Part shown: positions 6,058-44,500 of the stretch, piece by piece
Numbering within the stretch: position 1 is the first letter of the stretch
How the letters are laid out: each line of letters starts with the position of its first letter
Assembly (NCBI RefSeq): GCF_006345805.1
Contig: NC_042999.1
Coordinates: forward strand, 24,862,001-24,926,000
Length of the DNA stretch: 64,000 nt
Origin: Octopus sinensis
Lineage: Eukaryota
Direction: 5' to 3'
Program-made: the position numbers and the translations under genes
The notes under the pieces: generated by a model
Told to the model about the DNA's origin: nothing
Databases searched by the model: none
Seen by the model: only the letters and a program-made list of their open reading frames with translations

Positions 6058-6120
<63 letters not shown>

Positions 6121-6546: not shown

Positions 6547-6625
<79 letters not shown>

Positions 6626-6879
6626 CATGTGTGCAAACATACATACATACTCATACACACTCACACACTTATATATACATATATACACACACTTACACAC
6701 ATATATATATATATACATATATATATACATATACATACATACATATAAATATATATATATACATATATATACACACACATATCTATACACACTTACACAT
6801 ATGTACACATACACACACATATTCACATATATACATATATACATATATATACACATATATACACATACACACACACCAC

Positions 6880-6921
<42 letters not shown>

Positions 6922-7097
6922 TACATATACATATATATACACATACATATATACATACATACACACGCACACATATATATATACCCACACCTACACCACA
7001 TATATATACATATATACATACATATACACACATACACACACACACACATATATGTACATACATACACTACACATACATATACATATACACCACATAC

Positions 7098-7135
<38 letters not shown>
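4560..7135. repeat. Long compound (TA)n/(CA)n/(TACA)n microsatellite field
   Basis: Directly visible. It is the source of the spurious Y/I/H/T and C/V/M/Y ORFs. Confidence 0.95.
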
Positions 7136-7136
<1 letters not shown>

Positions 7137-7319
7137 TTTATTTATTTTCTATAATTTGAAGTTTGTATAAAATCTCAATGTGTGAGAAAAACTGAGTGGA
7201 ATCATGAGTCCAGTAATTCACCGTTAAATAGTTCTAATACGTTCTTCCTTCCTTTAAAACAGTTGGGATCTTTTTCCCTTTGATTACTTTTAACGGGTCA
7301 AGGGATCACATAAAGCGTA

Positions 7320-8652: not shown

Positions 8653-8689
<37 letters not shown>

Positions 8690-14330: not shown

Positions 14331-16920
14331 TTTTACTTTTCTCTTTGCAGCAATATGCCACAAATTTAGTGATGAAATTACAGATGTTTATACAAGTAAG
14401 CTCTCCTTAATATTATTGTAGTTATAAATTTCCCATTGTGACATGTGGAAATGTTTATCTGTTAGAGGAATTAATAAGAGATGGGAAGTTTTCAATTAAC
14501 CATTGAACTGTGAAACAGAGGTGGACCTTTTTTGTCATGTTCATAATTACAATTATTGCTATCATCATCATAGTTGTCATTTTTGGATCTTTTCCTTTTG
14601 AACGGCAGACAATTTCTAGTTAACTAAATACTTTAAAACTTTGTATACTGGTAGAATGTGTCAAAATAAAACATTTTTTCTCTTGGCTTTCTTGAGAAAA
14701 TTGTAATTTGTTTATTTAACGTAGTTTAATTTTTTGAATTTTAACCAATCAATGGTCTCTATTGAGCTAAAATCATTTGCTGCGTCTAAAACTGAGACAA
14801 CATCCTGTCACTAACCCTAAACCTCCCCCCAATCCTAAATTTTTTTTTTCTTAATTGTTAAATTAATTTAATTGTTACTCGTGTAAAAAAAACTAAAGCA
14901 ATGGAAAATAATTTAAACAATTAACAAGCAAAATAATTCTATAATTTTATACACACACTTTCCGTACGTATACGGAAAGTGTGTGTATAAAATTATAGAA
15001 TTATTTTGCTTGTTAATTGTTTAAATTATTTTCCATTGCTTTAGTTTTTTTTACACGAGTAACAATTAAATTAATTTAACAATTAAGAAAAAAAAAATTT
15101 AGGATTGGGGGGAGGTTTAGGGTTAGTGACAGGATGTTGTCTCAGTTTTAGACGCAGCAAATGATTTTAGCTCAATGGAGGTAATCGATTGGTTAAAATT
15201 GCCGAAATGCTCGGATTTTCAGATGAAATATCTTACAAACTATAGAATTTTCTCAATAAAACCAAGAGAAAATGATGTTTTATAAACACATTCTACCAGT
15301 ATACGAAGTTTAAAACTTTTTAGATACCTAGAAATTATGTTACAAACTGCCGTTCAAAAGGAAAAGATCCTCATTTTTATGCCCAATTTTTCCATGTTGG
15401 CATGGGTTACACAATTGCTTGAGATAGTATCCTGTAGTCAGATACCTCTCATGATGCCAACCCAATTACTATACATTACCTTAAAGGGTAATTTATAGTA
15501 ATTGAAATGTAATAGTTCCAAGCACTTATCATCTGCTTGATTTCTTCTGAATCAGTGAATAAATTTCCAGTATAAATGCTAGTATTCATCATATAGACCT
15601 TTGAAAAATGAGAAGTAAAATCAGCCCCCGTGGCATTTGAATTTCAACAAAGGCAGGTTTTCGTTTCAAAACTCGGTTGTTTTTACCAGTTTTTATGTCT
15701 TTTGTAATGTCCATGACAGTCAGACAAAGGATAAGAACCAAAGATGTTACATTCTCCGTTCTCATAATACCAATTGTGATTATCAAACCCTGTGTAGTCT
15801 CCTATGAGCTAAATGTTACAAAGACTATTAATCACTATTATAGATTTGGCTCTAACTTAAAGCCCATGGCGTATGATAGTGAAATACTCTCAAATGAAAG
15901 CATCTTTTTTTTTACTTTTACTTTTACTTGTTTCAGTCATTTGACTGCTGCCATGCTGGAGCACCACCTTTAGTCGAGCAAATGGACCCCGGGACTTATT
16001 CTTTGTAAGCCCAGTACTTATTCTATCGGTCTGTTTTGCTGAACCGCTAAGTGACGGGTACGTAAACACACCAGCATCGGTTGTCAAGCAATGCTAGGGG
16101 GACAAACACAGATACACAAACACATACACACACACATATATATATATATATACATATATACGACAGGCTTCTTTCAGTTTCCGTCTCCCAAATCCACTCA
16201 CAAGGCCTTGGTCGGCCCGGGGCTACAGCAGAAGACACTTGCCCAAGATGCCACGCTCATCATCATCATCATCATCATTTAACGTCCGTTTTCCGCGCTA
16301 GCACGGGTTGGACGGTTTCGACCGGGGTCTGGGGAGCTCGGGACTGCCCCAGGCTCCAGTCTAGTCTGGCAGTGTTTCTACAGCTGGATGCCCTTCCTAA
16401 CGCCAACCACTCCGCGAGTGTAGTGGGTGTTTTTTACGTGCCACCTGCACAGGTGCCAGAGGGGTCTGGCATCGGCCACGTTCGGATGGTGCTTTTTATG
16501 TGGGGGGGGGGGAGAAATATAGGGGAGCACCAGTGGGGAGGGGTGGTTCAGAGAAATGATGACAGGTTCTAGGCAAGTAGAACGTAGGATATCAGAGAGG
16601 GGTAATGCATGGTCAAATAGCGTATTGAAGAGGGGGGTTCGAAGAGTAGACACCTATAATGGTGGTGGGAGAAGCGACATCCGGTATAGATGGAGCAAAA
16701 ATATAGAGATATCCGTATTGGTGGTGGGGGTGGGCAAGGGCGGGTGCACCGGGAATATGACGGGCTGGCTTAAAAATGCTCTTAGCAAAGAAGAGGGGGG
16801 ATGGCAGACAACGTAAAAGAGGGAGAGAGAGAAGGGAAATAGTGGAACCCCGCGAAAATGGGCCGCCATTGAAAAAACCCCTGTATGGAGAAATAATATG
16901 CAATACAAGGCGAAGCTGAA

Positions 16921-18156: not shown

Positions 18157-19702
18157 ACACACACACACACACCTGCTAGAAATTGCTGCCAGATTTTACT
18201 TAAATAACACACTACTGTTAATGTATGGTTTAAGAGAGATTTTGCTACTATTTCTAGCAAGTCAAGTCAGTCGCATAGTGCCTGCTATATAGACTTGACT
18301 TCACAGTCAAATGGTTCTCTACAGGAAGAGCATCATGCTATGAGAAACAGTTCCTCCAAAACTGGGTTAATCACTAAATCGGTGATAGTGTGAGTAAAAT
18401 GGATTAATCTCTGATGGTGAGAACTACAAGGTAGTGTCTATAATTTGCAGCAAAGGAAACATTACAAGAAGCTTAATTCAAAAAGTACTTGTTTCATCCT
18501 GTGCCACTATGCATTCACATAAGATATACACTGACATATGTACTTATATCTATGATGGGTTTTGGTACAATTTCTGTCTCCCAAATTGTTCAATTTGAGT
18601 CTATGCTATGAATCAATAGGATTGAATCTGGGTCAAGGATTACCAGAATCAGGAAAGCTTCTCTGGGCTTCTTGACAGGTTATTGATCTTTGTGAAATGG
18701 AAATCTCATTCCTAAGATGCTATTTGTTTCCAGCTCTCTGTGTAAACATGTCTGTTGTTTGGTAGACTGGGACATTATTGGCTTGTTTGGTAACAGATGG
18801 GGGTTGGTGTTAGGTAAGGCATTTGCCCCTACATATCTGATTCATGCAAGAATGGAAAAGTAAATGTTAAAATGAGGATTATGATGTTAGTCTGTCAGAG
18901 AAAACACCTTGTATTTAGTTGGTTGTAAAGGAATCTTGCTTACTCTTTTACTCTTTTACTTGTTTCAGTCATTTGACTGCGGCCATGCTGGAGCACCGCC
19001 TTTAGTTGAGCAAATCAACCCCGGGACTTATTCTTTGTAAGCCCAGTAGTTATTCTATTGGTCTCTTTTGCCAAACCACCTAAGTGACGGGGACGTAAAC
19101 ACACCAGCATCGGTTGTTAAGCAATGCTAGGGAGACACACACAAACATACATATATATATATATACGACGGGCTTCTTTCAGTTTCCGTCTACCAAATCC
19201 ACTCACGGCCCGGGGCTATAGCAGAAGACACTTGCCCAGGATGCCACGCAGTGGGACTGAACCCGGAACCATGTGGTTGGTTAGCAAGCTACTTACCACA
19301 CAGCCACTCCTACTACTATGTAGTAATTTTGTTTTACATTTTTTGACCAAGCAAGCCATGTCATAATTAAAGAGATTAATATATTAACTATTCAAAGTTA
19401 GCCTAAAAAGTGGTGATTGGATGGATACTTGCTTGGATATTTACTCAATTTTGATGCCAATTCTCACACTTAACATTATTCTAAAACATGGAGCAATAGA
19501 AAACTTTACAGCATTTAGGTCTATATTTAAGAGATGAGGAATTAGGTACATTATTTAAATTATTTACATTGTTTACATTTGACGGATATTTGTCCTCATC
19601 TTGTTCGTTGATAACACGTTTCGGCTGATATACCCTCCAGCCTTCTTCGGGTGTCTTGGGGAAATTTCAAACCTGGGTTCTCATTCCTAAGGTATTTTTC
19701 AA

Positions 19703-19736
<34 letters not shown>

Positions 19737-22293
19737 GTTAATGTGCAGGTCACTACTTGGAATCGAACTCGGAATCTTGGGGTTAGTAGCCCGTGCAATA
19801 AACCACTACCCCATATGCCCATGGGCATATGGCATAGTGGTTAAGAGCATGGGCTACTAACCCCAAAATTCTGGGTTCGATTCCAAGTAGTGACCTGAAC
19901 ACTAACAATAATAATAATAATAACATTGAAAAATACCTTAGGAATGAGAACCCAGGTTCAAAATTTCCCCCAGGACACCTGCAGAAGGCTGGAGGGTATA
20001 TCAGCCGACACGTTGCGTTAACAACAAATAAGATGAGGACAAATATACGTCAAATGTAAATAATGTTTACAGCATTTAGTTTTATCCTTTTATGTTTTGA
20101 GTTCAAATCAGCCTTTTTTTTTATCCTTGATTTTTAATTCTTAGAGGTTAGAAAATAGTTTAAGTTATCTGAACTTGTCTTCCATTGCCACTGTTAGTGA
20201 TCCTTAAACTAATACTTTTTTTTTTTTTTACATTCCAATAAGGGTAATGAGAGAAATAGAAGCTGTTCGTCAAGAAGCAGCACTTCTTCAAGATCAAATG
20301 AGACTAGTCAAACAAGATATTCAAAAGGTAAATACATACCCCCACTCTCTCTAGCCACTAACATTCTTTATTTTCTCTCCTTGTTTCTTTCTGTCCTCCT
20401 TTCTGAGGAAGAGCGTTGGCTCGAAATGTTAAAGACTTTTTCACTTGCCGAGCGTTAAACTAATGCATCTGTTTGTTGTCTACACCACCTGTCTTTATCC
20501 TTTGTTTTTTTTTGTGAATTTTCCCTATATATATATATCTTGCAAACAACTTGCACATGCAAGTGCTACCAGTCAAAAACTCCGGAAGCCAGCAAGTGTA
20601 TGGGGTCATCAGGAGAGAATGCACACCGTTTCGGGGCCTACCTCTCGACGGCATCAATGCGCACCCCCCCCCCCCCTCACTGATATGAACCCCCGATTGC
20701 TAGATCTGCTGGTTATCAAATAAAGCTCAATATCCTTCTAGCCATCACTCATCTTCTCTTTTTAACCAAATCCAGTGGCTAGCCTTCTCCACTGTAGATT
20801 GGATATCGGTAATGGTGGTATTGACTTTACGATGAGTTAAGCCTAGCGATAAATATCTATATATATATATATATTTGTGATAAAAGCTGTATTGGTATCG
20901 GATATCTCACAGATAGCTGAATCAGAACACATAGCAGCTGCTAATGTTTGTTGCATAAACTTACTTTGTGTGACCACCACCTTCCAATCTTGTATTATAT
21001 TGTGGATGTATCCCCACCTGCTGTGAATTATGCTTTGTGAATTCACCACTTGCTAATTTATTATCTCGTGCACCTTCCCACCTGCTAATCTACCATTATG
21101 TATTGTGTCAACACCTCCCACTTGCTAATTATTGTGACCAGACTAACAAACAGTAACATTTGCTAAACAAGTGGTATATTTTCTCAGATACATCACTTGG
21201 TTATAAGTGAGATATTTTATAGAATCAGTATTAGTAGGTATGAAAGAGAGAAGCTGAAATTTTGTATTGTATAGCACTTGTGAAATGTGTTCTTACTTTG
21301 CGTTTATATTTTAGGTTGAACAGGACACCTCTCAGTCCATGCAGACCCTCTTGAAACTTGATGGCATAAAATCTCGGATGAAAGCAACTTCTGATGCTCT
21401 CAAGGTAAAATGGATTTTACTAAAATCACAGAAAATCACATTCTGAGATTACTGTTTATGTTTGGAGTTAACTTTGATTTGTAAGTGTTTGAGTGTGTAT
21501 GTGTATATATATATATATATATACACACACACATGTGTGTGTGTGTATAATATATATGTATATATATAAAATACAAAATGGGACAAGAACGCAAAACATC
21601 CAGACAGTTAGGTGATACAAGAAAGGGACAACAAAACATCCAGATAGACGATACAAAGAAAACAAGGACGTTGGAGTTTTCTTTCCTCAGTTGAGTTCCA
21701 GATTATATTTGCAATTTCAGCTGGTTATACTCGAGATTGCTCCAATCTGGCCAGCCCCAAGGAAAAACTAAGCTAAAAGCATTAGATTCCTTGAAGAAAA
21801 TCAGCGAATGTATACGAAAACAAGGACGGAAAAAAATGGTGAAAGTTACAGAAATACAAATACCAGGACATAACAACAGGTGTCTTTCGACTAAGGACGA
21901 ATTAAATTAAGCTGGTGTGTGTGGAAGTAAAGCCTCATGGCAGGGATGCAAGATTTCACAGGCACAGGGAAGAATATAGATGTTGCACGGACAATGGCTG
22001 AACCATGAAAGAAAGGTCAGGCTTGGCTGAACACCAGTCATGTGGGGAGAAAAGAGAGAAGTAGAAGCAGAGGGACAGAAGAAATAAGAAGGGGCAAGAA
22101 AAAATGACAGGGACACAGTGAGGTGAAAAGAGGAGGGAAAGTGAGCATGAAGAGAAGGCAATGAAATGTGAGAGACTGGGAATGAATGAAGTAAGCATGA
22201 AAGGGCTGATAGAAGGAAAGAATAAGAGAATAGAGTCGTACAAGATTTTGATAAATATATACTTAGATATAAGAGACCAAAGTGTACGTAGGC

Positions 22294-25300: not shown

Positions 25301-28300
25301 TACAGGATACATTTGTTCATAGCACTAACATTAGAGTGATTACTATGTTTATATACAGGGTGTCCCAAAATTAAGGCAACTGACTTTTGTCTTTGTTTGA
25401 AATCAATGGTCAGTCAGTAATTAACACACTACCAGTAATAATTAATTATCACCTTGTAAGGTAAGAAGGCATTTGTTCAGTTGTTCCATGCAGTGTGATT
25501 GAAAGATAGCCTAAGATGGGATCCAGGTAACAAAAATCTCTCCTAAAGATTTATAGTATCATTGTACTTGAGATACTACATTTAGCTAGGTCAATGAACC
25601 AACGCACATTAGTGTAGAAGTTAGACAAACTATGATGATGATGATATGATTTACTCAAAAAACTGAATCGTTCTTACTTTATATAACTAAAGAGAACTAT
25701 TATTGTTATTTCAGCAAATGCTGGTTGATACCCCAGATTACCAACAGCGTTGTCAGCATCTGGAAAAACTTCAAAATAAGTTGGAGACCCTACTAAGTCC
25801 TCAAGTTGTAGCTGCATTTAATGCACAGTCACTAGGTAAATGTTGGATTTAGTCTCTTATTAATCTCAATGGCCGTGGAGGTGCAATGGCCCAGTGGTTA
25901 GGGCAGCGGACTCGCGGTCATAGGATCGCGGTTTCGATTCCCAGACCGGGCGTTGTGAGTGTTTATTGAACGAAAACACCTAAAGCTCCACAAGGCTCCG
26001 GCAGGGGATGGTGGTGATCCCTGCTGTACTCTTTCACTACAACTTTCTCTCACTCTTACTTCCTGTTTCTGTTGTACCTTTATTTCAAAGGGCTGGCCTT
26101 GTCCCTCTCTGTGTCACGCTGAATATCCCCGAGAACTACGTTAAGGGTACACGTGTCTGTGGAGTGCTCAGCCACTTACACGTTAATTTCACGAGCAGGC
26201 TGTTCCGTTGATTCGGATCAACCGGAACCCTCATCGTCGTAACCGACGGAGTGCTTCCAATCTCAATGGTCAGTCTTTTTCTCAATACAAGGGAACCGAG
26301 TTTTAAACAAACAAACAAAAAATGTAAACGTGTAATGATATTGAGAACAATGTGTGAAGAGAAGATTGCTAAATTGATTTAGAATTGTTGTTGTTGTTGT
26401 GGCTTAGCCCTGAGTCAACACTGACCAAAGATTATCCCTGTGATTATCCCTGTCTTTTTTTATATATGTATGTCTATATGTTTGTGTGTCTGTATAGAGA
26501 CTCCCTCTTCGGCTCATGATATATATACATGCTGAATGTAAAGGTGTAGTGGTGATAGAATTAGGAAGATAGTTCTCCTGAGTGAGTATTGGTATCGAGG
26601 TTTGACCTCAAGCCTGTAAGTTAATAAAGAACATGTTAATGTTCTTTATTGTTAGGGCATAGGAGTGGCTGTGTGGTAAGTAGCTTGCTTACGAACCACA
26701 TGGTTCCGGGTTCAGTCCCACTGTGTGGCACCTTGGGCAAATGTCTTTTACTATAGCTTCGGGCCGAACAAAGCCTTGTGAGTGGATTTGGTAGACGGAA
26801 ACTGAAAGAAGCCCGTCGTATGTATGTATGCATATATATGTCTATATGTTTGTGTGTCTGTGTTTGTCCCCCCAACATCGCTTGACAACCGATGCTGGTG
26901 TGTTTACGTCCCCGTAACTTAGCGATAGAATAAGTACCAGGCTTACAAAGAATAAGTCCTGGAATCGATTTGCTTGACCAAAGGCGGTGCTCCAGCATGG
27001 CCACATGACTGAAACAAATAAAAAGTAAAAAAAAAAAGTAAAAGTAATGCAGTATCCTGTTACTCCTTAGTTTCATTCTGTGTTCAGATGCAAGCAAAAG
27101 TTTTGTTTTTTTTGTCCATATGTAGGTTGATGAAATAGTTTCCAATCATTTACTGAAATTGATTCAATTCATGACACAGATTCCCTACAATTTGTGACCT
27201 TCTGCTGAAGGGCCAAATCAGTTGTACGGTGCTGCTTATTTCAGGGAACCTATCACATGCACCTATTTCCAATGAGGGAAACTAAGTAATTGCCTTGACC
27301 ACAGACACAATACAGTGCTAATGATATGTTATGAACTTGTGACCTTTGAACCAGTAACCCAACATACATCCAACAGACTTGAGTAAATTACTCAGTCAAT
27401 AGTCTGATATACTATTTACTCTCTGTAATTTGCCATGCTATTTACTCAGTCAGTAATTTTCAACAGAAGTTGCTATTAGTTAATTTTGAAGTTTTCTTTG
27501 AACAGTCAGCTGTCAGTTTACCTGGATAGAAACAATGCAGTTGATAAGAATGATGGAAATTAATGCATGCAAAATTTCACACCTCTCGTACCAGTCCTTC
27601 ATAGTCGGCCTATGAACTTTTCAACCTACTCTCATCTATTTGTCATTGTTTGATATATTTTTACCTATTTAACTTTCTCTCCTCCTTTAACCATATTTCT
27701 TTACATGATTGTATGAGGAATATTATCTATCTTCCTGTCTACACCTCCTTCGTTTTTCACCCTCTTGTACTACACTCCTTAGCAATCCTTTGCTCTGCTA
27801 AGTCAATTGCTTGTCTTCAGTTTTTTGTCCTCATTTCCTCAATCCCAGACTAACAACTACAATGACAAAGTACTGTATTTTACAAACCTCGTGGCAATAA
27901 ACTTTGTCACTCTTCCAATTCATTGATTTTTACTGAAACTAACCTTTGGACTTGCATCAACAAAGCGATATTTTGATACAAGGATATTTTATTTGGAATT
28001 TTTTTATAGAGAGCCTGTTAAAATGTAATGGTAACTCAGTGAACTGTTTGTTGAGAACTTGGTGGCTCACTATAGCATATCACTGTAGAATAATTTTCTT
28101 CTCCTTTTGCAGAAGCTACACAGACTTATGCAAAGATATTTGAGGACATCAATCGCTTGGGTCAGTTGTACAAATATTATCACAAGTGTCAGAAGGTAAG
28201 TCAGTTTTGGCATCAATTTAGGCATCAATTTAAACAACCCTCTCACTTATTCATGCACATGACAGTAATACATATCTTAAAATATCAACATTGATAAGAG

Positions 28301-31300
28301 CTAGGTTTTACATATAGGTATTAATGAAACTAGAAATATTGAATTTCTAAATGTCTCAATGAGACATGAGCGGTGGTGGAGCGATAGAGTGGTTGTATAA
28401 AGTCAACATAACGTTGACAGTCCTGTAGAGGGAATTTCACCACCGCTATTTAGCCCTAGGAAGCATCGACGCTTCCTGTCGGCTTTGACACATTTCCTGT
28501 GTCCTTATATTTGCAAAGGGGAGGCAAGCACCTCTCTGTAAATAGATATATTTGCAAAGGCTTGGCAAGTATCACCGCTAGCAGGGACTCGCTACCCTGG
28601 ACTGATGACGGGCAAGACCCAGAAACATGCATGTATTCAGGTTGCTAATCCTAACTGGTGGGGGTGCTTGCCTCCCCTTTGCGAATATAAGGACACAGGA
28701 AATGTGTCAAAGCCGACAAGAAGCATCGATGCTTCATAGGGCTATATAGTGGTGGTGAAATTCCCTCTAGGGGACTGTCACGTTATGTTGACTTTATACA
28801 ACCACTCTATTAATAAAAAGTTATTTTAAATGTTATATGTGGTTATAGCAAGTAATTTGTTATGTAAGAGAATAAATGTACTTTTTTACAGAAATGAGTT
28901 ACTACTTTATTCATTCAACTAACCTTGAACCTTATATGAAGCTAACTAAATAAAGGTTTCTGTTCAGTTAATGTAATCCTAGCAGAGAAACAAAAGATGT
29001 ATTAGCTGTGTGACTTGAAACAACTGTAATCAAGCTATTATGTCAAGGCTGAATGTGAAATGTATGGCTTGAAATTAACTGCCTTATCATGGCCATTAAG
29101 TTAGCTGCATAACTGAAGAAAATTGTCATATAATGGCTAATCATTGAGCTACATAACTTGTGTTTGCTGACGGTCATTAAATTTCCTTGATATAGTATAA
29201 CTGTTTAATTAGCTGGTCTATTGAGAGAAAGTCCAGTAGCCAGTAGCGATAATGACTGGTAAATTGAACTGTAATGGTTTGCATAGCAGTTGATAAAGGC
29301 CCAAATGTGTGGTAAGATCTATTGGTCAAAGTCACCAATGCAGGAGCCTTTGTGGACGGGCTCTGAAAAACAATGTACCTTTTCTTTTAAAATAGCATAT
29401 ACTTTTGGTATAGCCTATTATTTGGGTTAGTTCATTTCTTGATAATTTTCATTTACTGGGTTGCTCCAATAATAGCACTCCATGATGACAGTGCTTATCT
29501 GTTTACGCCACTTCTGCCTATTTTTACAGCTAGCAGTAGCTAAATTACAACTCGGTCCACCCTGCTGCGCAGTGGGTGCTTGTCAGGTGACACTGCTCCA
29601 CTTTTGGTTCCAGTCCCATTTATGCTGTTATTTGGCTCATTATTTGACATCCTTCTCTCTCTTTCGGAGAGGCACTGAGCACCTACACGCACACATACAC
29701 ACACGGCAGTAACTTCCGCCTGCCGAATTCAATCACAAAGCTTCGGTCGGCTCGGGGCTACAGCAGAAGACACCTGCCCAAAGTGCCACGCAGTGGGACT
29801 GAACCCGAAACCATGTAGCTAGGAAGCAAGCTCCCTAACCACACAGCCACGCCCGCGCCTGTGAGGGTTTTACTGTCCATGAGTATTATTTTCATAGCTT
29901 GATCACTAAATGCACTGTCATAGTTTAATTCCACTAGACCCCAAGCTGATATTTCTTGTTCATGAGATTATTGTTATCATTATTATTATTAAGGGAAAGA
30001 GCAATGTATGCCATCAAAGTGACACTGGGGTACAAATGTATGAAGTGCTGTATACCCATCATGACTACCTATCTAATAAGGATACACCAAGCACATGCAT
30101 CACAGCCATATGTGCATGACATGGTGATCTTGTATCAAGATAAACAGTGCATGAGCTTTGTAGGTGGGGCCCAGTTAGAATCTTCTTCAAGTCGAGTAGC
30201 TCATCCTGCTCAAAAGGTCCTTGGATGAAGGTTGTTTAAGGATGATGAACAAAACGCCCATGTTTCCCAGAGGTGAATTATTCAAACCCCCAAACATTCC
30301 TCTCAACACATGACTATGATGCTTCCCCATTACTCCTGCTCGTGATCAGAGATGCACATATAGTCAGCCGCTAAGGGTCATGCTCAACTGGTTAAGGTCA
30401 AACAACTGATAAGCAAATCTGTAGTATTGAGCAAAATATTTGCTGTAGCCCGTCTTTTTATACCAAGATAAAATATGTACATGATAACACTTCCAATCAG
30501 TTAAGATCAGAAGCCATGAGAATCACTACCTTGTACTGCACAAATATTATCATTATATTATTATTATTATTGATATTGTTATTATTATTATTTTACAACT
30601 GACTGCATCTTTATATTCCTATCAACAGGTTCAACTGATTAATCACTGGAAGAATATTCTGGACACCAATTCTGATGACACATTCTTAGAATGGCTTACA
30701 TCATTTTACGATCATCTGTTGTCTACTTGGCATGGACAGGTGACTTAGAATTTTGTGTTATATAAATTACCTCATTCCCAAACTGGCCCCCTCCTGCATA
30801 ACCAATTTTACATGGATCTCTTTTTAAAGTGGCAAGGTTCACATTAGCTGAAGTTGTCTGAGATACACAATACCTAAAATGCAAACAACAGACTGGAGAC
30901 ATCTAGAATGTCTTTGATGAAAACTCTCTCCTCAACCAGTGTTTGATGAGGGTTAGACAACAACATTGGCATTCCTGCTTGACAGAGTTTCTACTGTTGG
31001 AAGAAACCAAGTTGAAACTTGGTACGACTACTGTGCCAGAATTGGGACCTTTTCCGTTCGAACGGCAGTGTCATATGAAATTGTCACCCATAATTATGAC
31101 CCTAGAATTGATCTATTGCATTTCAATCTCTTTTAGGGTTAGAGGTGGGGGAAGGGTATATTTTTTTCTTCACAAATGTAAATAAACCCAATCTGTTTCT
31201 TAAACGAGGGACATATTCATACGGCACAGAATGTTTTTTAACTCAACAGACGTCACTGATTGGTTGAAATTGCAGAAATTGAAGAAAAAAAAGCAACAAA

Positions 31301-34300
31301 TATCTTACAAACTATAGAATTTTCTCAATAAAGGCAAGAGAAAAAGATGTTTTATAAACACATTCTACCAGTATACGAAGTTTAAAATTTTTTAGTTACC
31401 TAGAAATTATGTTAAAAACTGGCATTCAAACCGAAAAGATCCCAGAATTGTTTGTCAGTTTTAGCTAGTCCTCAATAATAAAGTAAACTAGTCCTCAATA
31501 ATAAAGTAATTATCCTGCTAATTGTAATTATATATGTGTATATATTCCGTTGGGTGTAATAATATTGGTATAAATATCCTCTTGACTCTAATAATATAGG
31601 TGTAAACAACTTGCTGACTGAAATAACACAGATTTGTGTGTGTGTATGTAAATGGTGGACATCAACTATTGATGTTTTCTAAAATTTTACATCGGTATGG
31701 CTATCAAAGGAAGGTGAATATTTTACAGCATGTTTTGATAATGAGATTGTAAATGTGTGCTGTGCAAGAAACTAACAATTATTATAGTTTTTGCATTTAT
31801 TTAAAGGGAAAATAAAACATGTTGCCTTAGGTATATTATTACTGAAAACAAAATAAAAGGCAAGACAATCATGACCACATCACTTTTCATCATAAGCCTA
31901 CTGGATCTAAATAATTTTACTTTTTGAAATGCTTTTTCGGTTTGAACGGTAGTTTTTAACATAATTTCTAGGTAACTAAAAAAATTTAAACTTCGTATAC
32001 TGGTAGAATGTGTTTATAAAACATCTTTTTCTCTTGGCTTTATTGAGAAAATTCTATAGTTTGTAAGATATTTGTTGTATTTTTTTCTTCATTTTCTGCA
32101 ATTTCAACCAATCAATGACATCTATTGAGGTAAAAAACATTCTGTGCCATATGAATATGTCCCTCGTTTAAGAAACAGATTGGGTTTATTTACATTTGTG
32201 AAGAAAAAAAAATATCCTTCCCCCACCCTAACTAACCCTAACCCTAAAACAGATTGAAATGCAATAGATCGATACTAAGGTCATAATTATGGGTGACAAT
32301 TTCGTATGGCACCGCTAGAAAAAACTGCCGTTCAAACCGAAATGATCAGCTTTTACTAATTGTTTTTGTTCTGTAGAGAAAGTAGCAGCAGCTATCCAAG
32401 TTTCAATTTTGTATATGTCTTCAAATCATTTAGTTAATTATTTCTGTACATTGTTCTTCTTTTACATATTTTTTAAAGATTATGTTTTTATTTATTTTTT
32501 TTTAAAGATAAAATGGTGCAGTCAAGTATTTCGAGATCCTGTACCTATTCTCTGTGACCTTTTCACAGAAGTCATCAAGGACCTTGACCCAAGTTTGGAT
32601 GATTGCCTTTCTGTATATATTGACGAGCAGGGTTCTAATGTCACCTTAATTAGTCTTATCAACTTGAAACAGGTTTGTTTTATTGCTTATATGACTTTGT
32701 TTCAAGAATATTTTTAGATATCTGTATTTAGAATATTGATTGTTTTACAGTGCTCCTTATTGCTGTTGTTGTTATTGGTGGTGGTGGCGGCAGTGGCATC
32801 AGTGTTAGTATAGTGTAGTATCAGCTGCAGCACTGTAAACCATCTTTGCCTCTATTTTCTTTTCCTGATGTTAATTATGTAAACATCAAATCTATATATA
32901 TAAAACTCAACTTGTGTGTCTGTGTGTTTAACTTCCCGGCACATCTCCTCCTAGCCAACAAATCGTAGAACCACCCAAAATGGGTCACTTAAAGTTTAGG
33001 CGAATGAAAAATGAACTGCGCTATTTCTGTTCCGAAATTCATCTCGCAAGTGCAAAAATCGATAATGTGTTTGTTTAGGCCTTATCCCATGCATTAAATA
33101 GTGAACTTTACTCAGTCAGCTGTTTGACGTGAACTGTGTTCACCACGCGTGCAAGCATGCGTAAATTGCATGAAAAATAAAAAAATCAAGATATAAAAAC
33201 GAATCGCCATAAACATTGTAGAAATTCGGCTAAGAAATGAATTTTCGGGATGTAGCCAGGAGGGTTTTTTCGTATTAATTGTTTGGACTTTGTGAACACA
33301 TACCAATTGTTTCCATAACATTTTTAACACTTTGAATTAAATGCGACCATTTTGCGTTGAGTCTGCTGTTTGAATCACTTTAACCAAATTTTAGCAGGCC
33401 AGATTTTTGATCATCACGATACTTCGCCAGCGACTCCCTGACACTCTCCCCTGAAATCCCCGTTGAGAAATCTATTATATATATAAAATTACTTTGAATG
33501 TGACTCCTGAGAAAGAGTAAAAGTAATTATCCGATGAACGACGGGTATTACTGCTAGTATTATATAAAAATGTCACACTGGCTTCAAGCACATGAACGTA
33601 CAACAGAATGATGATTTATGAGAGTGGTCAAATAGCTGCACTACCTGTGGTTCAATAGCTGGACAACTTGTTAAATATTTGGACCAATTGTGCCTAAATG
33701 AGCTACATTTGCTTAAATATTTGGACTACTTGTGGTTAACATTTGAGTCACTTTTTAGATATTTGGACTATCTGTGAAGAAATAGTTGGGCTACCTTGAG
33801 TTAAATCAGTGGTTAAATTGATAGGTTACCTGTTGTTGGATTACATGTGGCTAAATAATCAATTAGTCTGCATGGATTTCAGTTGCTGCAGACCTGTATT
33901 GTCAATAGGCATTTCCACAGTGAAGGTCTCAAAGTAGCTAATTGTTTGTCATATCCTTCCCTGTGGACAGACTAGCAGATAGCAATTGTTTTCTCATTGA
34001 GATGAGGCAATGTCACAAAGTCAAGATTGAGGAATCTTGTCTCTCTCTCCCCTTTGATAAAGATAAGGAATGTTGTGTTGTCATATGAGACATCAATAAT
34101 GAGCCAGTGTATAAACAATAGCAAGACATACACCCAAGACTACCTGAAATACAATGCATTTTTAAATTATATGTTCTTTCACCTTGTAAGAAGCTTTCCA
34201 TCAACCTCTCTCTCTCTCGCTCTCTCTCTCTCTCTATATATATATATATTTATATGTGGCATGCTGTGCTGGTGGCACATAAAAAGCACCAACCGATCGT

Positions 34301-34920: not shown

Positions 34921-37900
34921 TGTGTGCTATATTTAAAATTTTGTCATTTGTTGAAAGAGCTCTCTTATTCACCTTTTTTTTAAATTATTTCATAAGGTTT
35001 CTGAAAGATTTTCCAAAAGTATTGAGTCTGCTGTGGAATATTGTATGTCAGGTAAGCTTGAAATCATCTTTTTACTTACATGCATTGTCATCTGTTACCA
35101 CTTTGTTTTCCTCTGAACACTCCTTTCTCCAAAACACCCTCCCATCTGTATTATATATTGAAGAGGTCAAGCAACAAAACAGACGTTCCTTCTCACTGAC
35201 CTGAATAAAAACCCTCCATCTACTTTACTGTTACATGTTGGTTAGTCAGCTTCCACATGGGTATTAGACCTGCTTAAAATAGAAGCCAAACTTCTCAAAA
35301 CTAAACCTTACAGTATTTTAAGACATGGATGGATGCATTAGTCTTGGTTTCATGCAATAGGAAAGTTTTGATAGAATTGAGTTGAGGTTACACAACTGCT
35401 ATCACTACTACAATACCAACTCTACTTCATTGTTGATATTTGATCTTCTTCCAGATAATCCAGAACATGCAGTAAGTCTCCTGGATCTACAGAAGAGTAT
35501 ATATGCTGTCTACCAGCCATATCTGAGCAAATATAAACATTTTGAAGAGGTTGCCCTTCAGTGTGAGCTTGATAACATCAGACTGGTGAGTTATTTATTA
35601 TTTTGTTTCTGCAAGTTACACTTTAACTCTTTTATGACCATCAGTCAATCACTCAGAATCCATAACCTAGTCAGCTTTTAAATTGCAGTAATGTTAAGGT
35701 CGGCTATTCATGTTTAAACAACATTGCTTCTCATATCACATGCCACAACAGAAGCAAGCACATACCCGCAAAATTCCCATCCCACACCCTACCTGCAATT
35801 GTCCACTGAGAGGATCTTACCTCTTGAAAGCTATGGTCTAGAGAGCCACTCTCTCACTACCCAATGGTATTTATGAGATACTGCACAGGTATGACAGCCA
35901 ACAACTTCAAGAGAAGATATTCTCAACATATGCACTCCTTCAGATGTAGGTACAGAGAAAGCTTTACTGCTTTATCTAGAGACTTCATGACCATGGCAAC
36001 ACATCACCTAATATCAAAGGGTGTATGCTCAACAGGGCTCCACCTTACTCGTCAGGGGGCTCAAAATTGCCAATTCTGCCTCCAGGAAAGGTTGCACATA
36101 CATCAACAATAGAAACCCTGAAATTTCATATTTGCTCCAGGAATCAGTCCGAAGAAGGTTTGCAAAGGTTTTTTTGAAATTTTCTCTTAACCAAATTCTT
36201 TTACTTTCTCTTATTAAGGATCATGAGGAAATTGTTGATTCTATTGGTTTACTTGGAGAATCTGTCAGCAAGCTGATGTCTTCTGCTAAAAAGGTTTGTA
36301 TTATTAAGCCTTTTCATTTAAAACCAAAACATTTCTGTCAACTGTCAGACTGTCTATGACTAATTAACGACATTCTTCAATCTTAATTATCCATTCTCTT
36401 ATGTAAAATACCAAACTGGTTTGTCATTCTAAACATTGTTCTTCACAGCACACAATCACATACAAACCACAAACCATCACCATTATCATCATCTATTCCC
36501 ACCCAATAAACAAGTCTTGGCTATATTTCTGCTATTAGGTCAGTTAATGTATGGTTATATATGGAGTGTATTTGCAATTTGCTAATATCTGTATTGCTAA
36601 TGATTTGTATGTGAATGGCAAATCTAGAATTTCTCTTTTATAACCTATTTTTGATGGTTTACTGAGAGGAGAAACCTCAATTCATTTTCAGTGCTTCAAA
36701 AACTTGTATGACAAGAGGTAGTTATTCTCAGTTCAGTGATCCAGCCTTGGTGCCTGCCATAGAGTGTTCTCCACTAAAGGCATCAAAGAACCAGACAGTG
36801 AAGCCAGGCAACAAAGTTAGCCCACCACTTAAGACAGGAACACTCCTTTTGAATAGCTTACACCCAGTTTCTGTTGACTAAATTTCACTCAAGTCTTTGG
36901 TTGATTTGAGGCTGTGGTAGAAGACACTTGCTCAAGGCTTCATGCAGTGGAATCAAACCCAGAACCTTGAAGTTGCTAAAAGATGCTCTTTATCAGACAG
37001 TCATACTTCTACTCATAACTGTTAATCTCTTTCATCCTGTTGGTAGATATTTGTGATGGGACCATGATACAGAGTTCCACATGACATCTGTTGTACTTAG
37101 CAACGGAGCCCTTGTACAGGAAAAGGTTAAGATGAAGAACCTCAGATCATACTGTGGACTGAGAGAAATTAGAATTTAATTTGTTGTGGGTGCTGGTTTT
37201 GGTTAATGTAACAATACCAACAGGTAGATATTTATATTTAGCTACGATCATCTTCATCATTATCAAGTCCATAAGCACCACTAGCATCACTGTCATCATC
37301 ATTACCTTTAAGTCCACCACCATTACCATTTGGAATATTCTGCAACATCTCAGACCTTGTTTATTAATGAAAGTAAATTTTACATTTTAGGCTAATGAGA
37401 GGTGTATCCAGTTTACTGATGGCTTTGGATATCTGTACTTATTGGAAGCCCTAAAGGTATGTCATTATATAGTATATACCAAGGTATACTGACAAACATT
37501 TACACACATACTCACTGACCCAAGACACACACACACACACACAAAGTGCAAGCATGGTTTTATAATTAAGAAGATTACTTTGCAACCATGAGGGTTTTGG
37601 GTTCCATCTCACTGAATGGCATGACCAATAACTTTGAGGCGAATTTATGAGATGTAAAGTGCTTGGAAACTCATTATTTGTGTGTGTGTGCATATCTTCA
37701 CACTGGCACTATCTGAGCAAAACAGAAACATTGTTTATGCCCCTTATAAGCAGTGTCCCTTAATTTAAAAAGCAAGTACACGTTGGCAACAGGCAGGGCA
37801 TCCCACCATAAAATATTGCCTCAGTAAATGCCCAGCCTATACCAGCATGGTAAAAACAAACTATAAAACAATGAAAACATCATAAGATATATTTGAATAT

Positions 37901-40900
37901 GCCTTTATATATTTTGCATTCTTTTATTCTTTAGATGTTCTATATCAGTTACTGCCGAGAGTTCAAGAGAGTTCTGTCAAATGTAAGGGCTAAGTGTTAT
38001 ATTGGTCGACAGCAGGAAGATTTTGAAGATTGGTCTTTATTTCAACAATCCTTACGGATGATTCAAATCTGTGGTCTGTATGCAGTATACTCCTTTCATT
38101 GTTTCTCATTTCTCTTATGTATTTGTGTATTCATGTGTTTGATTTACAGTAAGTGATTTTGTGTCGAGTCTCTTAACCTGTTGGAAACTTAAGTCAACAA
38201 AAAAATTCTCTGGGTAGTTGTGGTTCTAGAAAATGCAGCTATGTACTTCTCAAATCACAATGTACTGTCTAAAAAGAAAAGGACACATTGAACAATGTAA
38301 ACTTAGATATACTATGTCTCATGTAAAATGAAATGCTTACTGCTGAAATGGCTTTGATTATAGGTTCCCGGAATAGGGCTGTCCTAAGACAGTCCTAGTC
38401 TTGTGGTCCTGTAGTCAAACATTGAAACATAGGAATCCCTCTGACGTCTCTGTCTTCATGTGAATTTTGAGAATATTTAGCAGCTAGAGCTCTTCACAAC
38501 TCTAGCAAGGATTGAACTTTACATGGGGAAATAAAACTCTTATCAATTTGACAGTATTACCAATGTTTTCAGCAACAACTTGTTTTTAGTTTGTTGCTAC
38601 TTCTTTGCAGCTTTATGGACCGTATCGAGTGATACAGTCCATATAGCTGCAAATAAGTAGCAACAAACTAAAAACAATGAAGATATTTGCAGACATGATA
38701 GTGCTGATGACAAGACCTTCAACAACAGTTTCCATATCCTGTAGTCCATAATATTAGTGATATTGTGGATTTTTCATTGTTAATCTATTTCAATCTAATC
38801 CAATAGCAAGGTCAACAACTTCCTTAACCCTTTCGTTACCAACCCGGCTGAAACCGGCTCCGGCTCTGTACTATAAATGTCTTGTTTTCATAAGTTTTGA
38901 ATTAAAATCTTCCACCAAACCTTAGTCACAATTTACGTTCCTAACACTAGCTTAATGATAACTAAGTTATTTTGCTAAATATTTTGTTATATTTAAAGTA
39001 ATTGAAAGAAGCACAGAGAATCTTAAAATAAATACAGTAACGAAAGGGTTAAACCCTTATTAAACTGCAAAATCTATTTAGTAACAAACTTTCTCCAACA
39101 TAATGGTGACAGATCAGATAGTATAACGTATCAAATTCTCATTTAGTTATCCACACGGCAACCCATAGATCAAGTTGTCATCAGCATCATTGCTATTCTC
39201 CTCCTCCTTTATGTATTATATCTTGTAGAGCCAGCTCCAGCCTTATAGTCTGAGGCATTATCATCATCATCATCATTGTTCGATCGTGGTCGAGACAATG
39301 GAATTTACTATGCTACGCCAGACTTCACGGTCCATCATAGCATTACAGAGGTCCTGTTGCTGGATGCCTGTATCCCTGGAGATTACATCAGGGTAGGAGA
39401 GTGTGTGCCCTCTGGTATTGCGAGTAGATGGCTTCCAGAGGAGAAGAGTAGAAATTACTTCTTTTTCAGCTCTACAACAATGTCCAGCAAACTGGACTCT
39501 CCTACCCTTCACAAGAGATGACACAGGTGGTAGTTTCCCATATATTTGCATTTTGGTTGGATGACGCTTCCATGAGAGATTTTGAGCTCTCATAAGGAGG
39601 CAAGTGTAGGTTCCATCCAACCGCCTCTCAAGCTTTGATAACGTCCAGGTTTCTGAGCCATATAGTAGAATTGGTTCGACTGTGGCTTCACAGTCGAGGC
39701 ATTATACAGGAAGATAGTTAATTAAACAGCACATAGTATGGAGGTTGTTCCCAGTAGTGTGATCTACTTTGTTGGTATTGATGTTACTCAGGATATAGTT
39801 GATAATATTTTCCACTTTTCTGTTAATGAGTCATAGATCTTTGAGGACCACTGGTGTTATTTTGTTCTTCAAACTCCACATCTTGGGATTGATAAAATAA
39901 AGTACCGGTCAAGTACTAGGGTCAGTGGTACTAATTAACTCCTATCAAAGATGCTGGCTTTGTGCCTAAATCAAAGCCCGAAGAGGAAAATAAGGGTGGA
40001 GAGGGAAGTGTTGCTTTCTAGCCATTTTGTTGAAAGGTGGATGAGAGTGGTGAGAATGGCGTGAGTGAATGGGGCCCATCCTGAGTATATGTCTGTAAAT
40101 CAGAGATAAGGAACTAAGAAGAGGCAGCAATCCCAGAATAGCCCTCGAACATTTCCTCCCTAATTGTGAAAATGTTATTACTTTTTTTTTGTTACTCCTA
40201 TTTACACAAATAGACACATACACTCAGTGTTTTGTCTTGTGCCATCCTTAAGGTTTTTCTTTGTGTAAACCATTTCTAGCCAATAGAGAAATCATCATTA
40301 TTATTTTTTAGACTATTGTAGCCTCTAATTTTATGTCTTTTAATTGACTTGTACCACATTCCTTTCGTCTATATCTATATTTATGTGAATATAGTCTGTA
40401 AGAGCTAGGGAGTGGATTCAGCCTATACATTAGACCAAGGTCCTGAATGCCAAGGAGGACCTCCCCTACTCACTAAAAAAATCACAGTCCCCTTGGATTT
40501 TGAGCAACATTTCCCTCTACTCAGGACCCAAATGCATTCTTATTCAGCTTTACCAAATTTGTTTGGAAGGCCCTGTGTGTATATATATATATATATCTGA
40601 TCGGGCAGTCTTCTAAACTCTACAGTTCTGTCAAAAGTGAAGACTTCTTTTGTTATTCAGTTTACTCTATATCTTTATATATAAAAGTGAGGTTGTGTGC
40701 TGTCTGTCTCCTTCGATTTAGATTCCTAACTACTCCCACATTTTGTGGTGCAGTTTAACCAAAACCGGGTATCTTATAGTCGTGATTCATATCAAGCCCT
40801 TCTGGGTATTAGCGCACGTCTACGATGAGTCTACGATTTAAAAAAAAATTTACCATAAATTTTTCCCATTTTTAATGCATTTTTGGCATACATAAGGGAA

Positions 40901-41491
40901 GTAACTCTCTAAAAATTTATTAGTAAAGCTCAGAACGTAAAAAGCTACAGTAACACCCCCCCCCCACCTTTGTGGTTAGCCATATTGAGATGGCTATTAT
41001 ACTTTACATCTCTAAAAATGCTTATATAGTTATTTCCCTTACAAACCTGAGCAACGCCGGGCGATACTGCTAGTTTATTATACTTTGATTGTCTTAATAG
41101 ATGTTTGTTATTGTTGTTGCATTCAGGCGAGTTGATCATACAAACTGAAGAACTTGATAAAACCCTCATCAACAATATCATCTCAACCTTAGGCAAGTAC
41201 TTCTTACCCAGTCAGCATTCACCACTGAAAGAAACTACTGATAAAAAGTAAGTCACACCTATATTAAGTAACAATTACTCTTTTACTCTTTACTCTTTTC
41301 AGTCATTTGACTGCGGCCATGCTGGAGCACCGCCTTTAGTCGAGCAAATCGACCCCGGGACTTATTCTTTGTAAGCCCAGTACTTATTCTATCGGTCTCT
41401 TTTGCCGAACCGCTAAGTTACGGGGATGTAAACACACCAGCATCGGTTGTCAAGCGATGTTGGGGGACAAACACAAAACACACACACACAT

Positions 41492-41586
<95 letters not shown>

Positions 41587-44500
41587 TATAGCCTCAGCCC
41601 CACCAAAGCCTTATGAGTGGATTTTGTACACAGAAACTGAAAGAAGACTTTCGTATATATGTGTATATCTGTATGTCTGTGTTTGTACCCCCACCATCAC
41701 TTGATAACTGATGTTGCTGTACTTACCTTCCTGTAACTTAGCCTTTTGGCAAAATGCACTGATAGAATAATGCTTAGCTGCATTTTGGCCATTACATTCT
41801 GAGTTCAAATTCCACCAAGGTTGACTTTGCCTTTCAACCCTTCGGGGTCGTTAAAATAAGTATCACTTGAATACTGGGATCAGTGTAACTGACTTAAGCC
41901 CCCCCCCTCCCCCCAAATTGCTGGCCCTGTGCTAGAATTCAAAACCATTATCATTTAGTTTTTTCATATTTGCTACTTGACAAAAATTTTTCTATATGGC
42001 CCAAGTAAGATTACCTTACCACACACTCACACATACATCCACATATATGAACCACTATCACCACCATCATCCTCACTGTCACCACACCACCACCACCACC
42101 ACCACCATCATCCTCACTGTCACCACACCACCACCACCACCATCATCCTCACTGTCACCACACCACCACCACCATCATCCTCACTGTCACCACACCACCA
42201 CCACCACCACCATCATCCTCACTGTCACCACACACCACCACCACCATCATCCTCACTGTCACCACACCACCACCACCACCACCATCATCCTCACTGTCAC
42301 CACCACCACCACCACCATCATCCTCACTGTCACCACACACCACCACCACCACCACCACATCATCCTCACTGTCACCACCACCACCACCACCATCATCATC
42401 CTCACTGTCACCACACCACCACCACCACCACCACCACCATCATCATCCTCACTGTCACCACACCACCACCACCACCACCATCATCCTCACTGTCACCACA
42501 CCACCACCATCATCCTCACTGTCACCACACCACCACCACCACCACCATCATCCTCACTGTCACCACACCACCACCACCACCATCATCCTCACTGTCACCA
42601 CCACACCACCACCACCACCACCATCATCCTCACTGTCACCACACCACCACCATGACCAAACTCTACCAGTCTTAGAGACTCAACAACATCTATGGGTGTT
42701 GTCCTTGTCTTCTCTAAACTTTAAAATATTAAAATTTCTAAAATCTTGACTGTTACTCAAATGTTTCTTAATATTTGACTTAAATCTCATATTTTGTGTA
42801 CAGGACTGGCAAGAAAGTGTCTCTCTTCCAGCGCCATGCTTCCCTTTTGCTGGAAGATGAAGCAGATATAGAAATTCTTGAAGAGTTTGTCTTGAAACTT
42901 GAGGAAGGTAAATACTTTTGGAAATCATGTTACTAAAAAGAAATTTTATTTTTTAAGTTGGGTTGCCATCATTATGGTTCAGTTCCACTGTACAGCAGTG
43001 TCTTCTACTATTGCCCTGGGCCAACTAAAGCCTTATGAGTGGATTTGGTAGATAGAAACTGAAAGAAGCCTGAGCCTCGCCTGGCCTCCGTGCCGGTGGC
43101 ACGTATAAAGCACCATCCGAACGTGGCTGTTTGCCAGCCTCGTCTGGCACGTAAAACGCACCCACTACACTCATGGAGTGGTTGGCGTTAGGAAGGGCAT
43201 CCAGCCATAGAAACATTGCCAGATCAGACTGGGCCTGGTGCAGCCTTCTGGCTTCCCAGACCCCAGTTGAACCGTCCAACCCATGCTAGCATGGAAAGCG
43301 GACACTAAACGATGATGATGATGATATATAGATAAATAATTTAAACTGAAGAATATTATTATTATTAGTCAATAAATGCAACAGAACATCTGTTTGTATT
43401 TTCACATTGTTTAAACACAATTTTATAATATTTTGGCACACTGGTGTACTGCAGTACACCATATGTAAACCATTATCCTATACTATACACCATGTAAAAT
43501 TATGATTCCTCTTGAAAGCTATATCTTTCTACTCTCTAAATCTCATATCTATAGAATTTATTCTGAGAAAACTTTGATAGAAACATGTAATTTATCTTCT
43601 TCTGCAAATCTGTTATTTGACTTTATGCTTTCTATCAATTTTACATTCTGAAACCAAATTTGTTGAAACTATGGACAAATATAGAAATTCTAGAAGAGTT
43701 TGCCTTTCTTGATGTATGAAGGGCATAACATACACTCTTTCTCTTCAGAAATTGACAAACCCAAAATATGATCTAGAAACTTCCATGGGAAACTTCTTCA
43801 GAGTTTTTTTGAAACACAAAATCTCTGTATTTAGATGGTTTTGTTACTGTTGGAACAAAATAAATGGTTTTGTCACTTTCGATGATTTTATAACTATTGG
43901 CAGAATTGGAAAAAAAACATCTTGTGTTATGTAGTTGGATCCCTCTACATTCTGAGTTTAAACCTGGCTGAAACTAACATCTAAGATCAAATAAAAATAC
44001 CAATTAAGTACTTGGGATGTTTTATCAGGTTCTACCCATCCCCTTACATTTGTGGCCATCTACCAGAGTGAAATCTTATTTGACTATCAGTTGGTAGAAG
44101 TGACAGGATATGATGTGTCTCTTAATTCTTTATGGAGTCATAGGGGTATCGTTGTTATATAGGTGTTCTGCTTAGAACCCATTCCTCTCCAGATCTGAAC
44201 ATAGGTAACCCCATTTATAACTTATTTTAACAACTCCAAAAGGATGAAAGGTAAAAATGGCCTTAGTGGGGTTTGAATTTGCATCACAGAGAGGTAGAAC
44301 AAATGCCAAAAGGCATTATAATATAATAATAAAATTATTGTATACAGTGCTCAGGTGCACCACAACTTGTCAAAAAGTGCGTATAATGTATATGCAGTAA
44401 TGTACAAATGTCTGGGAAGTGAACAGTGTATGAGTCAGATACATACTTGCGTGTGTATGGAGGGGACAAAATCGGTTGTAGTGTTGGTGAATCTCAGAAA

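Follow-up and report, generated by a model that had tools for sequence, protein, structure and literature searches.

We propose, with moderate confidence, that a type I hammerhead ribozyme motif in an intron of the COG7 gene of Octopus sinensis is cargo of a retroposon of the Penelope-like or retrozyme kind, two head-to-head, unequally 5'-truncated copies of which would make up the long inverted repeat in which the motif lies. The locus was studied in a stretch of 64,000 nucleotides (nt), hereafter the window (assembly GCF_006345805.1, contig NC_042999.1, positions 24,862,001 to 24,926,000 of the forward strand), and positions are counted from its first letter. In the proposed scheme, one insertion of about 480 base pairs (bp) from a dispersed, hairpin-rich repeat family would hold two copies that share a common terminus and differ in their internal truncation points: the short inverted copy would form the left arm, and the longer copy would form the central region and the right arm. 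The hammerhead would have survived only in the longer copy, about 175 nt from the terminus. As cargo of the element, as in Penelope-like elements and their non-autonomous derivatives (retrozymes and elements resembling short interspersed elements), the ribozyme would process element transcripts, usually as a dimer through its palindromic helix III, and at this locus the motif would be passively transcribed, in the sense direction, within the COG7 intron. The duplex of about 148 bp may be a by-product of the mode of insertion, and its main likely effect would be a generic one, that of a long intronic double-stranded RNA (dsRNA).

On direct reading, 28596-28641 agrees letter by letter with the initial annotation of this locus, which had been made from the sequence alone. 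Helix I (28596-28601/28636-28641, CCUGGA/UUCAGG) has 6 bp including one G.U. It is followed by the CUGAUGA core box (28602-28608), by helix II (28609-28621, CGGG-CAAGA-CCCA), with a 3-bp GGG/CCC stem, a 5-nt loop and a C.A at its base, by the GAAA box (28622-28625), and by helix III (ACAUGCAUGU, 28625-28634), a perfect 10-nt palindrome. H17 is A28635, and the predicted cleavage site is 28635|28636. The conserved type I core is complete (CUGAUGA, GAAA, the A28625-U28634 pair equivalent to A15.1-U16.1, and an H17 other than G), and the type I order of helices is present around it, with helix I open and helices II and III closed. The complete core, the 6-bp stem I and the GGG/CCC stem II with its basal C.A mismatch had all been named in the initial annotation, and all are present. 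Stem III had been described there as both a hairpin and a dimerization palindrome; the 10-nt palindrome stands, whereas the hairpin, a monomer form of 3 bp capped by a UGCA loop, has no predicted stability. In our folding calculations helix III becomes stable only by pairing between two molecules, over 10 bp: two copies cofold with a 10-bp helix III and both cores intact at -29.9 kcal/mol versus -8.9 kcal/mol per monomer. Within the central domain, the hammerhead fold lies 1.7 kcal/mol above the best predicted fold, and helix I is extended by further pairing within the central region. The motif fold is not more stable than that of shuffled sequences (z = +0.44).

The motif is a credible type I hammerhead, well supported in silico as lying beyond chance. 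We searched both strands of the window with a descriptor demanding exact CUGAUGA and GAAA boxes, a helix I of at least 5 bp, a helix II of at least 3 bp (a mismatch at its base being allowed), a helix III of at least 3 bp starting with A-U, and an H17 other than G. The only match on either strand was 28596-28641, and the same descriptor had 0 matches on 400 simulated windows. Conditional sampling puts the chance expectation per window at 9e-4 if helix I must have 5 bp or more, and at 2.6e-4 if it must have 6 bp or more; a fully palindromic helix III appeared in 0 of 600,000 conditional draws. Hallmarks of animal type I hammerheads include a dimer-type helix III that is palindromic, a helix I of 6 bp and a helix II of four positions (PMC4209133), and since the palindrome had been listed as such beforehand, it is not a feature picked after the fact. 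A custom covariance model, R1, built from 47 phage type I hammerheads with the three helices supplied, aligns end to end with 28596-28641 at 34.6 bits (E about 4e-8), with the reservation that R1 inherits a GG/CC helix II bias from the search pattern by which its members were collected and favours the candidate somewhat. The next-best match of R1 in the window reaches 15.1 bits.

Rfam gave no hammerhead match, either at gathering score or at E ≤ 10 on 601 nt, or on 71 nt, and its HH9 and HH10 models had no match at the locus. We compared this outcome with that for phage and metagenome sequences, 75 of which, all with complete type I hammerhead folds, had been collected by scanning public contigs for unusual helix II. 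At gathering score, Rfam reported none of ten of those loci, canonical and variant; in E-value mode, a canonical phage control reached 23.6 bits only, on RAGATH-1-hammerhead, and a C...A variant control with 9-bp and 6-bp helices had no match. Because positive controls, canonical and C.A alike, were missed as well, the Rfam negative says little, and we dropped it as evidence against a hammerhead. The descriptor statistics, the R1 score and the palindromic helix III, taken together, support the identification made in the initial annotation; of the Infernal search suggested there as a check, the Rfam part stayed without a match, as did its controls at gathering score, and our own model gave the 34.6 bits.

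The uncommon feature of the motif lies next to the core, where the G10.1-C11.1 pair is not present and C28609 faces A28621. G10.1-C11.1 is the most conserved hammerhead pair after A15.1-U16.1. A U.U mismatch at this position is known to be tolerated (PMC3088659); in an axolotl retrozyme family that has it, 22% of the monomer was cleaved in one hour, and the dimer cleaved better (PMC7229834). As for C...A, five independent phage or metagenome sequences carry it with full helices (L002, L008 (= L025), L012, L018 and L023), in the form C-(GGC or GGG)...(GCC or CCC)-A with a helix I of 6-7 bp and a helix III of 4-9 bp, and when C...A sequences were folded, the hammerhead junction was the best fold in 3 of 4. 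Rfam 15 reported none of these five, nor, at gathering score, the canonical L028, L029, L033 and L034. When the 10.1/11.1 position was counted over four viral scans plus the single C.A metagenome locus L002, G-C accounted for at least 98 distinct pattern matches and at least 72 complete type I folds, C.A for 18 matches and 5 folds, U.U for 20 and 2, and A.C for 13 and 3. Judging by these sequences, C.A occurs naturally, though rarely, and its presence is no reason to reject the motif. Should the motif prove to cleave, the repeat-borne type I hammerheads would gain a mollusc example with an unusual C.A beside the core. Curated Rfam models can miss such variants and clear phage hammerheads too, and automated annotation probably under-counts hammerheads.

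The pairing arms of about 148 bp and the small hairpins within them, both claimed in the initial annotation, are real. A repeat search found 28415-28532/28663-28780 (118 nt, 93%) and 28384-28414/28780-28810 (31 nt, 100%), and a global alignment of the arms over 149 nt has 8 substitutions and 1 indel; they are about 94% complementary. The 427-nt element that they delimit (28384-28810) folds at -304 kcal/mol, with z = -32 versus shuffles. On the + strand the arm mismatches are three G.U, two C.A and three transversions; there is no strand bias of G.U versus C.A, and nothing suggests that an RNA duplex on one strand was selected for. The arms are consistent with a DNA-level duplication followed by neutral drift.

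The limits of the arms agree with the initial annotation, which had placed the whole element at 28384-28810; the insertion, by contrast, probably reaches 54 nt further left. This left extension holds two perfect 7-bp hairpins, compared with a window background of 0.66 per kb, and probably belongs to the insertion, which would then be asymmetric and about 480 bp long (about 28330-28810), with the hammerhead off-centre. On either side of the extended insertion lies a candidate target-site duplication, TATTAAT(G/A)AAA, in AT-rich DNA; among window pairs placed in a similar way, 0.25-0.6% match as well as this. Directly beyond the arm ends at 28384 and 28810, we found no direct duplication of at least 3 bp, only a possible TA. 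Coordinates of all features are collected in the table below.

Features of the COG7-intron locus and its relatives, with the C...A hammerheads used for comparison (window positions, except for L-numbered sequences, which have their own)
Feature	Position	Strand	Basis or remark
Type I hammerhead motif	28596-28641	+	Direct reading; descriptor; custom covariance model
Left arm: the repeat unit's terminal ~149 nt, inverted, with small hairpins	28384-28532	-	Repeat search, alignment
Central region, longer copy only	28533-28662	+	Repeat search, folding
Hammerhead domain within central region	28570-28662	+	
Right arm: terminal ~148 nt of the longer copy; outer end is the family terminus	28663-28810	+	Repeat search, alignment
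One-sided extension, perhaps a "tail"	28330-28383	.	Two perfect 7-bp hairpins, 28331-28349 and 28351-28367
Candidate target-site duplication, left copy, TATTAATGAAA	28319-28329	.	10/11 identical to right copy
Candidate target-site duplication, right copy, TATTAATAAAA	28808-28818	.	Shares 3 nt with the end of the arm
COG7 coding exon, sixth recognisable, ending ...YKYYHKCQK then gt	28094-28199	+	PF10191 profile positions 200-241/772
Diverged single-arm relative (~65-70% identity)	2578-2722	+	Directly after broken long-terminal-repeat retrotransposon integrase
Short relative, terminal ~80 nt including terminal hairpin	40932-41015	+	Alignment
Second hammerhead-like motif, unrelated repeat	4288-4338	-	R1 15.1 bits, E 0.054
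C...A hammerhead, intergenic, L002	3685-3742		
C...A hammerhead, intergenic, L008 (= L025)	802-854		
C...A hammerhead, intergenic, L012	583-640		
C...A hammerhead, intergenic, L018	7366-7433	-	
C...A hammerhead, intergenic, L023	2636-2687	-	

Of additional interest inside the element is a 23-nt direct duplication, in which 28547-28569 repeats the inner end of the arm at 28506-28528. Through it, the right arm has two alternative partners, and the hammerhead domain has its own local closing stem. Several other kinds of element were also considered and set aside: a hAT-type 8-bp duplication at 28385/28809 is ruled out, being absent from the sequence; a Helitron-type CTRR end does not fit by eye; and tRNA-like A and B boxes in the arms were unconvincing, again by eye.

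The arms belong to a repeat family with two further copies in the window, a diverged single-arm relative at about 2.6 kb, whose homology upstream of about 2589 is uncertain, and a short relative at about 41 kb. Both keep the terminus and are cut on the inner side, at different points: the head-to-head pair measures 149 nt and about 278 nt, and the relatives measure about 145 nt and about 80 nt, giving 4 termini in all. These termini end alike (...CTCTAT, ...CTTTGT, ...CTCTAA). Beyond the arm ends similarity among the four is not significant and the flanks are unrelated, which places the shared terminus at or near 28810. Direct reading also revealed compensatory changes in the hairpins of the family, GAAGCA/TGCTTC versus GGAGGA/TCCTCC in one and GTCAAC/GTTGAC versus GCCAC/GTGGC versus TAGCCAT/ATGGCTA in a second. 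Since the terminal hairpins have been kept by such two-sided changes, they point to a single-stranded intermediate. The relative at 2.6 kb, the only one to reach into the hammerhead region, aligns weakly there as well, with doubtful homology (score 28, reached by 2 of 500 shuffles), and the aligned stretch (2514-2567) overlaps integrase-aligning codons. With all six-frame open reading frames of the element joined as a query, no further family copy was matched among called reading frames; a family-level DNA pattern had no match in metagenome and genome contig collections, and a literal-sequence search of the literature returned unrelated primers only.

Whereas the anatomy of the locus, its non-random fit to a hammerhead, the relatives of the family and the sense position in the intron are observed, we infer for this locus a retroposon class, a twin-copy mode of insertion and low activity. 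Penelope-like elements suffer much 5' truncation and often have an adjacent inverted 5'-truncated copy, which gives rise to inverted repeats; a tail on one side and a hammerhead close to the 3' end are further traits of theirs (PMC8557442). With a purified protein of such an element, both DNA strands were cut and extended, preferably at AT-rich sites (PMC11167929), and both dispersed solo hammerheads and opposite-strand pairs 100-700 bp apart have been reported (PMC4209133). The COG7-intron locus resembles these elements in its type I hammerhead with a palindromic, dimer-type helix III, placed near the element's 3' end (PMC4209133; PMC8557442), in the strong 5' truncation with an adjacent inverted truncated copy (PMC8557442), and in the probable one-sided extra stretch, the candidate AT-rich target and the dispersed solo fragments, which are many in the described elements (PMC8557442; PMC11167929; PMC4209133). 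It differs in helix II, which in minimal Penelope-like hammerheads is long and comes with a 5' bulge and a conserved G10.1-C11.1, whereas in this motif it has 3 bp and C.A. Animal retrozymes of the type without long terminal repeats (LTRs) are 170-400-bp repeats that carry type I hammerheads and are expressed as circular RNAs (PMC7229834; bioRxiv 10.64898/2026.07.22.740005). With them the locus shares the 6-bp helix I, the 4-position helix II, the short helix III with its palindromic tetraloop, the low GC content, a unit of a few hundred nt and the occurrence in molluscs; the axolotl family, with U.U at the base of helix II, still cleaves (PMC7229834). Unlike retrozymes, which are tandem, with at least two ribozymes and an excisable monomer, the locus has a single ribozyme and no tandem, and its duplex is a DNA-level inverted duplication rather than a viroid-like rod; retrozymes have also been reported as depleted from introns in vertebrates.

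Several observations weigh against the retroposon reading, in addition to the Rfam result, whose power is low. No reverse transcriptase (RT) or GIY-YIG frame was recognised in the insertion or its surroundings, a tandem or pseudo-LTR arrangement such as Penelope-like elements have is absent from the locus, where the only internal duplication is the 23-nt one, and the extension measures 54 nt versus 30-40 nt in described Penelope-like tails. The candidate target-site duplication is only modestly significant, and its position was chosen after the repeat had been seen. In the 2.6-kb relative the CUGAUGA box reads CUGAUUU, but the stretch is probably integrase (...AETVTKTLISG). Family copies seen are three only, all within the window, and the relative at 2578-2722 abuts an LTR-retrotransposon integrase, so that another origin is possible.

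The + strand carries COG7 between about 11.2 kb and 52.6 kb of the window. Searched with its last exon, the protein collection gave as best matches an ENA contig at 70% identity and Solemya velum at 62%, in keeping with a mollusc. The initial annotation was right that the motif is sense to the gene, and it had placed the cleavage site about 440 nt after exon 10, in intron 10. The distance holds (436 nt downstream of the exon), but the exon is the sixth recognisable coding exon and the intron number was wrong. Neither the repeat search nor the descriptor found a second hammerhead copy or a tandem at the locus, and since helix III has no second copy there to pair with, efficient cleavage of the COG7-intron copy is doubtful. 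For a single copy whose helix III has 3 bp and whose helix II has a C.A at its base, we expect weak or no self-cleavage. The consequence for the host gene would be an intronic dsRNA of about 148 bp and possibly low-rate cutting of the precursor mRNA (pre-mRNA), which is ordinary for a repeat-rich genome. The amniote intronic hammerheads HH9 and HH10 are likewise of type I and lie sense in an intron of a protein-coding gene; unlike the COG7-intron motif, they are single, deeply conserved motifs with canonical cores, outside young repeats. What is new here would be a member of the repeat-borne animal type I hammerheads with an uncommon C.A, and it opens no new kind of system.

The most serious alternative, which we nevertheless regard as unlikely, is that the element is a non-autonomous cut-and-paste DNA transposon, of the foldback kind or a miniature inverted-repeat transposable element (MITE), with terminal inverted repeats of about 148 bp and perhaps a TA duplication, carrying by coincidence a hammerhead or its relic in the middle. 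Like such elements, the locus is short and non-coding and consists mostly of two long, near-identical inverted arms; the sequence would allow a TA on each side, the subfamilies have a conserved terminus, and foldbacks are common in the window. We counted at least 8 long non-microsatellite inverted repeats in positions 1-61600, among them 14737-15200 (230-nt arms, 4-nt loop), 31065-32315 (arms of about 370 nt), 19593-20036, 54081-54378 and 60766-61394, several of them inverted pairs of repeats resembling short interspersed elements (SINEs), so foldbacks are ordinary there. Against a DNA transposon stand the lack of a fixed target-site duplication at the arm ends, where no direct duplication of 3 bp or more adjoins 28384 and 28810, and the hairpin-rich extension beyond the left arm only, with the better candidate duplication outside it. 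The two other family copies have one arm each and keep the terminus, and the compensatory hairpin changes argue for a single-stranded intermediate. No foldback family with a ribozyme core as its defining feature is known to us.

It is improbable that the arm family is part of an LTR retrotransposon, a region after pol or the LTR itself, and that the foldback is a rearranged fragment from near or inside a decayed integrase. The 2578-2722 relative does follow directly, on the same strand, upon broken RT, RNase H and integrase frames, and the stretch that aligns with the hammerhead overlaps integrase codons; the integrase similarity, however, is weak past "...TLISG", no such frames adjoin the copy at 40932-41015, translation of the central region yields no Pfam match, and the papers that we consulted describe no hammerheads in animal LTR elements. 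The broken pol itself, at 783-2560 (+), has RVT_1, RNase H, integrase zinc-binding and rve matches; its frame shifts near 2470-2490, and it breaks off abruptly where the single-arm copy begins.

A chance constellation inside an ordinary repeat could also mimic a hammerhead. The simplicity of the motif speaks for this, and large data sets should contain chance matches (PMC3088659); Rfam has no match, the fold is no more stable than shuffles, and the pair next to the core is non-standard. We judge this reading a shade less probable still, in view of the expectation of 2.6e-4 to 9e-4 per window, the palindromic helix III in none of the 600,000 draws, the covariance-model E of about 4e-8 and the failure of the Rfam test on clear positive controls. 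A second motif of the same animal type in the same window also speaks against it. This second motif reads AGCUUC CUGAAGA U-UUC-UCUU-GAA-U GAAA CAG..CUGU A GAAGCU, with a 6-bp helix I, a helix II of 3 bp plus U.U at its base, an H17 that is A and a 4-bp helix III with a CUAG centre; its dimer fold is predicted at -27.0 kcal/mol. About 36 nt plus a (TA)n run separate it from a distinct, near-perfect palindrome of about 290 bp (3963-4252), and it lies beside microsatellites. The two hammerhead loci have no sequence similarity, and their layouts differ.

To a similarly small degree, we can conceive that the family is an unclassified, short mollusc retroposon with a C.A hammerhead, and that cleavage within the apical domain of its foldback copies would feed ribozyme-made dsRNA into small-RNA or editing pathways. 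If this were true, the C.A variant, possibly an A+.C wobble, would be common to phage hammerheads that Rfam does not recognise, and a closed 148-bp hairpin would become open, two-stranded dsRNA with 5'-OH and cyclic-phosphate ends in host introns.

Least probable of all, in our estimation, is a dedicated ribozyme-cored foldback, in which self-cleavage at the apex would cut the COG7 pre-mRNA or open the loop while the duplex clamps the halves together, yielding two-stranded dsRNA or a regulated transcript: the motif is sense to COG7, sits at the tip of a long stem and pays only 1.7 kcal/mol for its fold, but the arms vary as neutral copies would, the window has many long inverted repeats with no tie to ribozymes, the other family copies have no foldback, and helix III needs a partner copy that is absent. 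The clamp and hairpin-release idea of the initial annotation has no support beyond geometry. Its view of arms and ribozyme as an undescribed system is not supported, in view of the long inverted repeats in the window, of which there are at least 8, the one-armed relatives, the second hammerhead-like motif in an unrelated repeat, the presence of the hammerhead in only one of two unequal copies and the published occurrence of such twin copies among Penelope-like elements (PMC8557442).

The window has further features of note. The frames at 39276-39701 (-), 44373-44801 (-), 35698-36109 (+) and 59923-60243 (-), which resemble what we take to be the RT C-termini of long interspersed elements or GIY-YIG fragments, had no significant match in Pfam. 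A repeat of about 450 bp with an internal CA/TA microsatellite, probably a SINE-like family, occurs on both strands (8430-8880, 15945-16280, 18890-19360, 26640-27145, 41311-41700, 46370-46930 and 49000-49430). Low-complexity sequence includes a CA/TA-type repeat of about 2.6 kb with strong negative GC skew (4540-7170) and a C-rich, coding-like tract at 41959-42750 (+) with runs of His, Pro and Thr codons and a GC skew of about -0.41. At the end of the window, an imperfect (TA)n microsatellite of more than 2.3 kb (61650-64000, GC 1.5%) encloses a unique island of about 47 bp at about 63329-63375.

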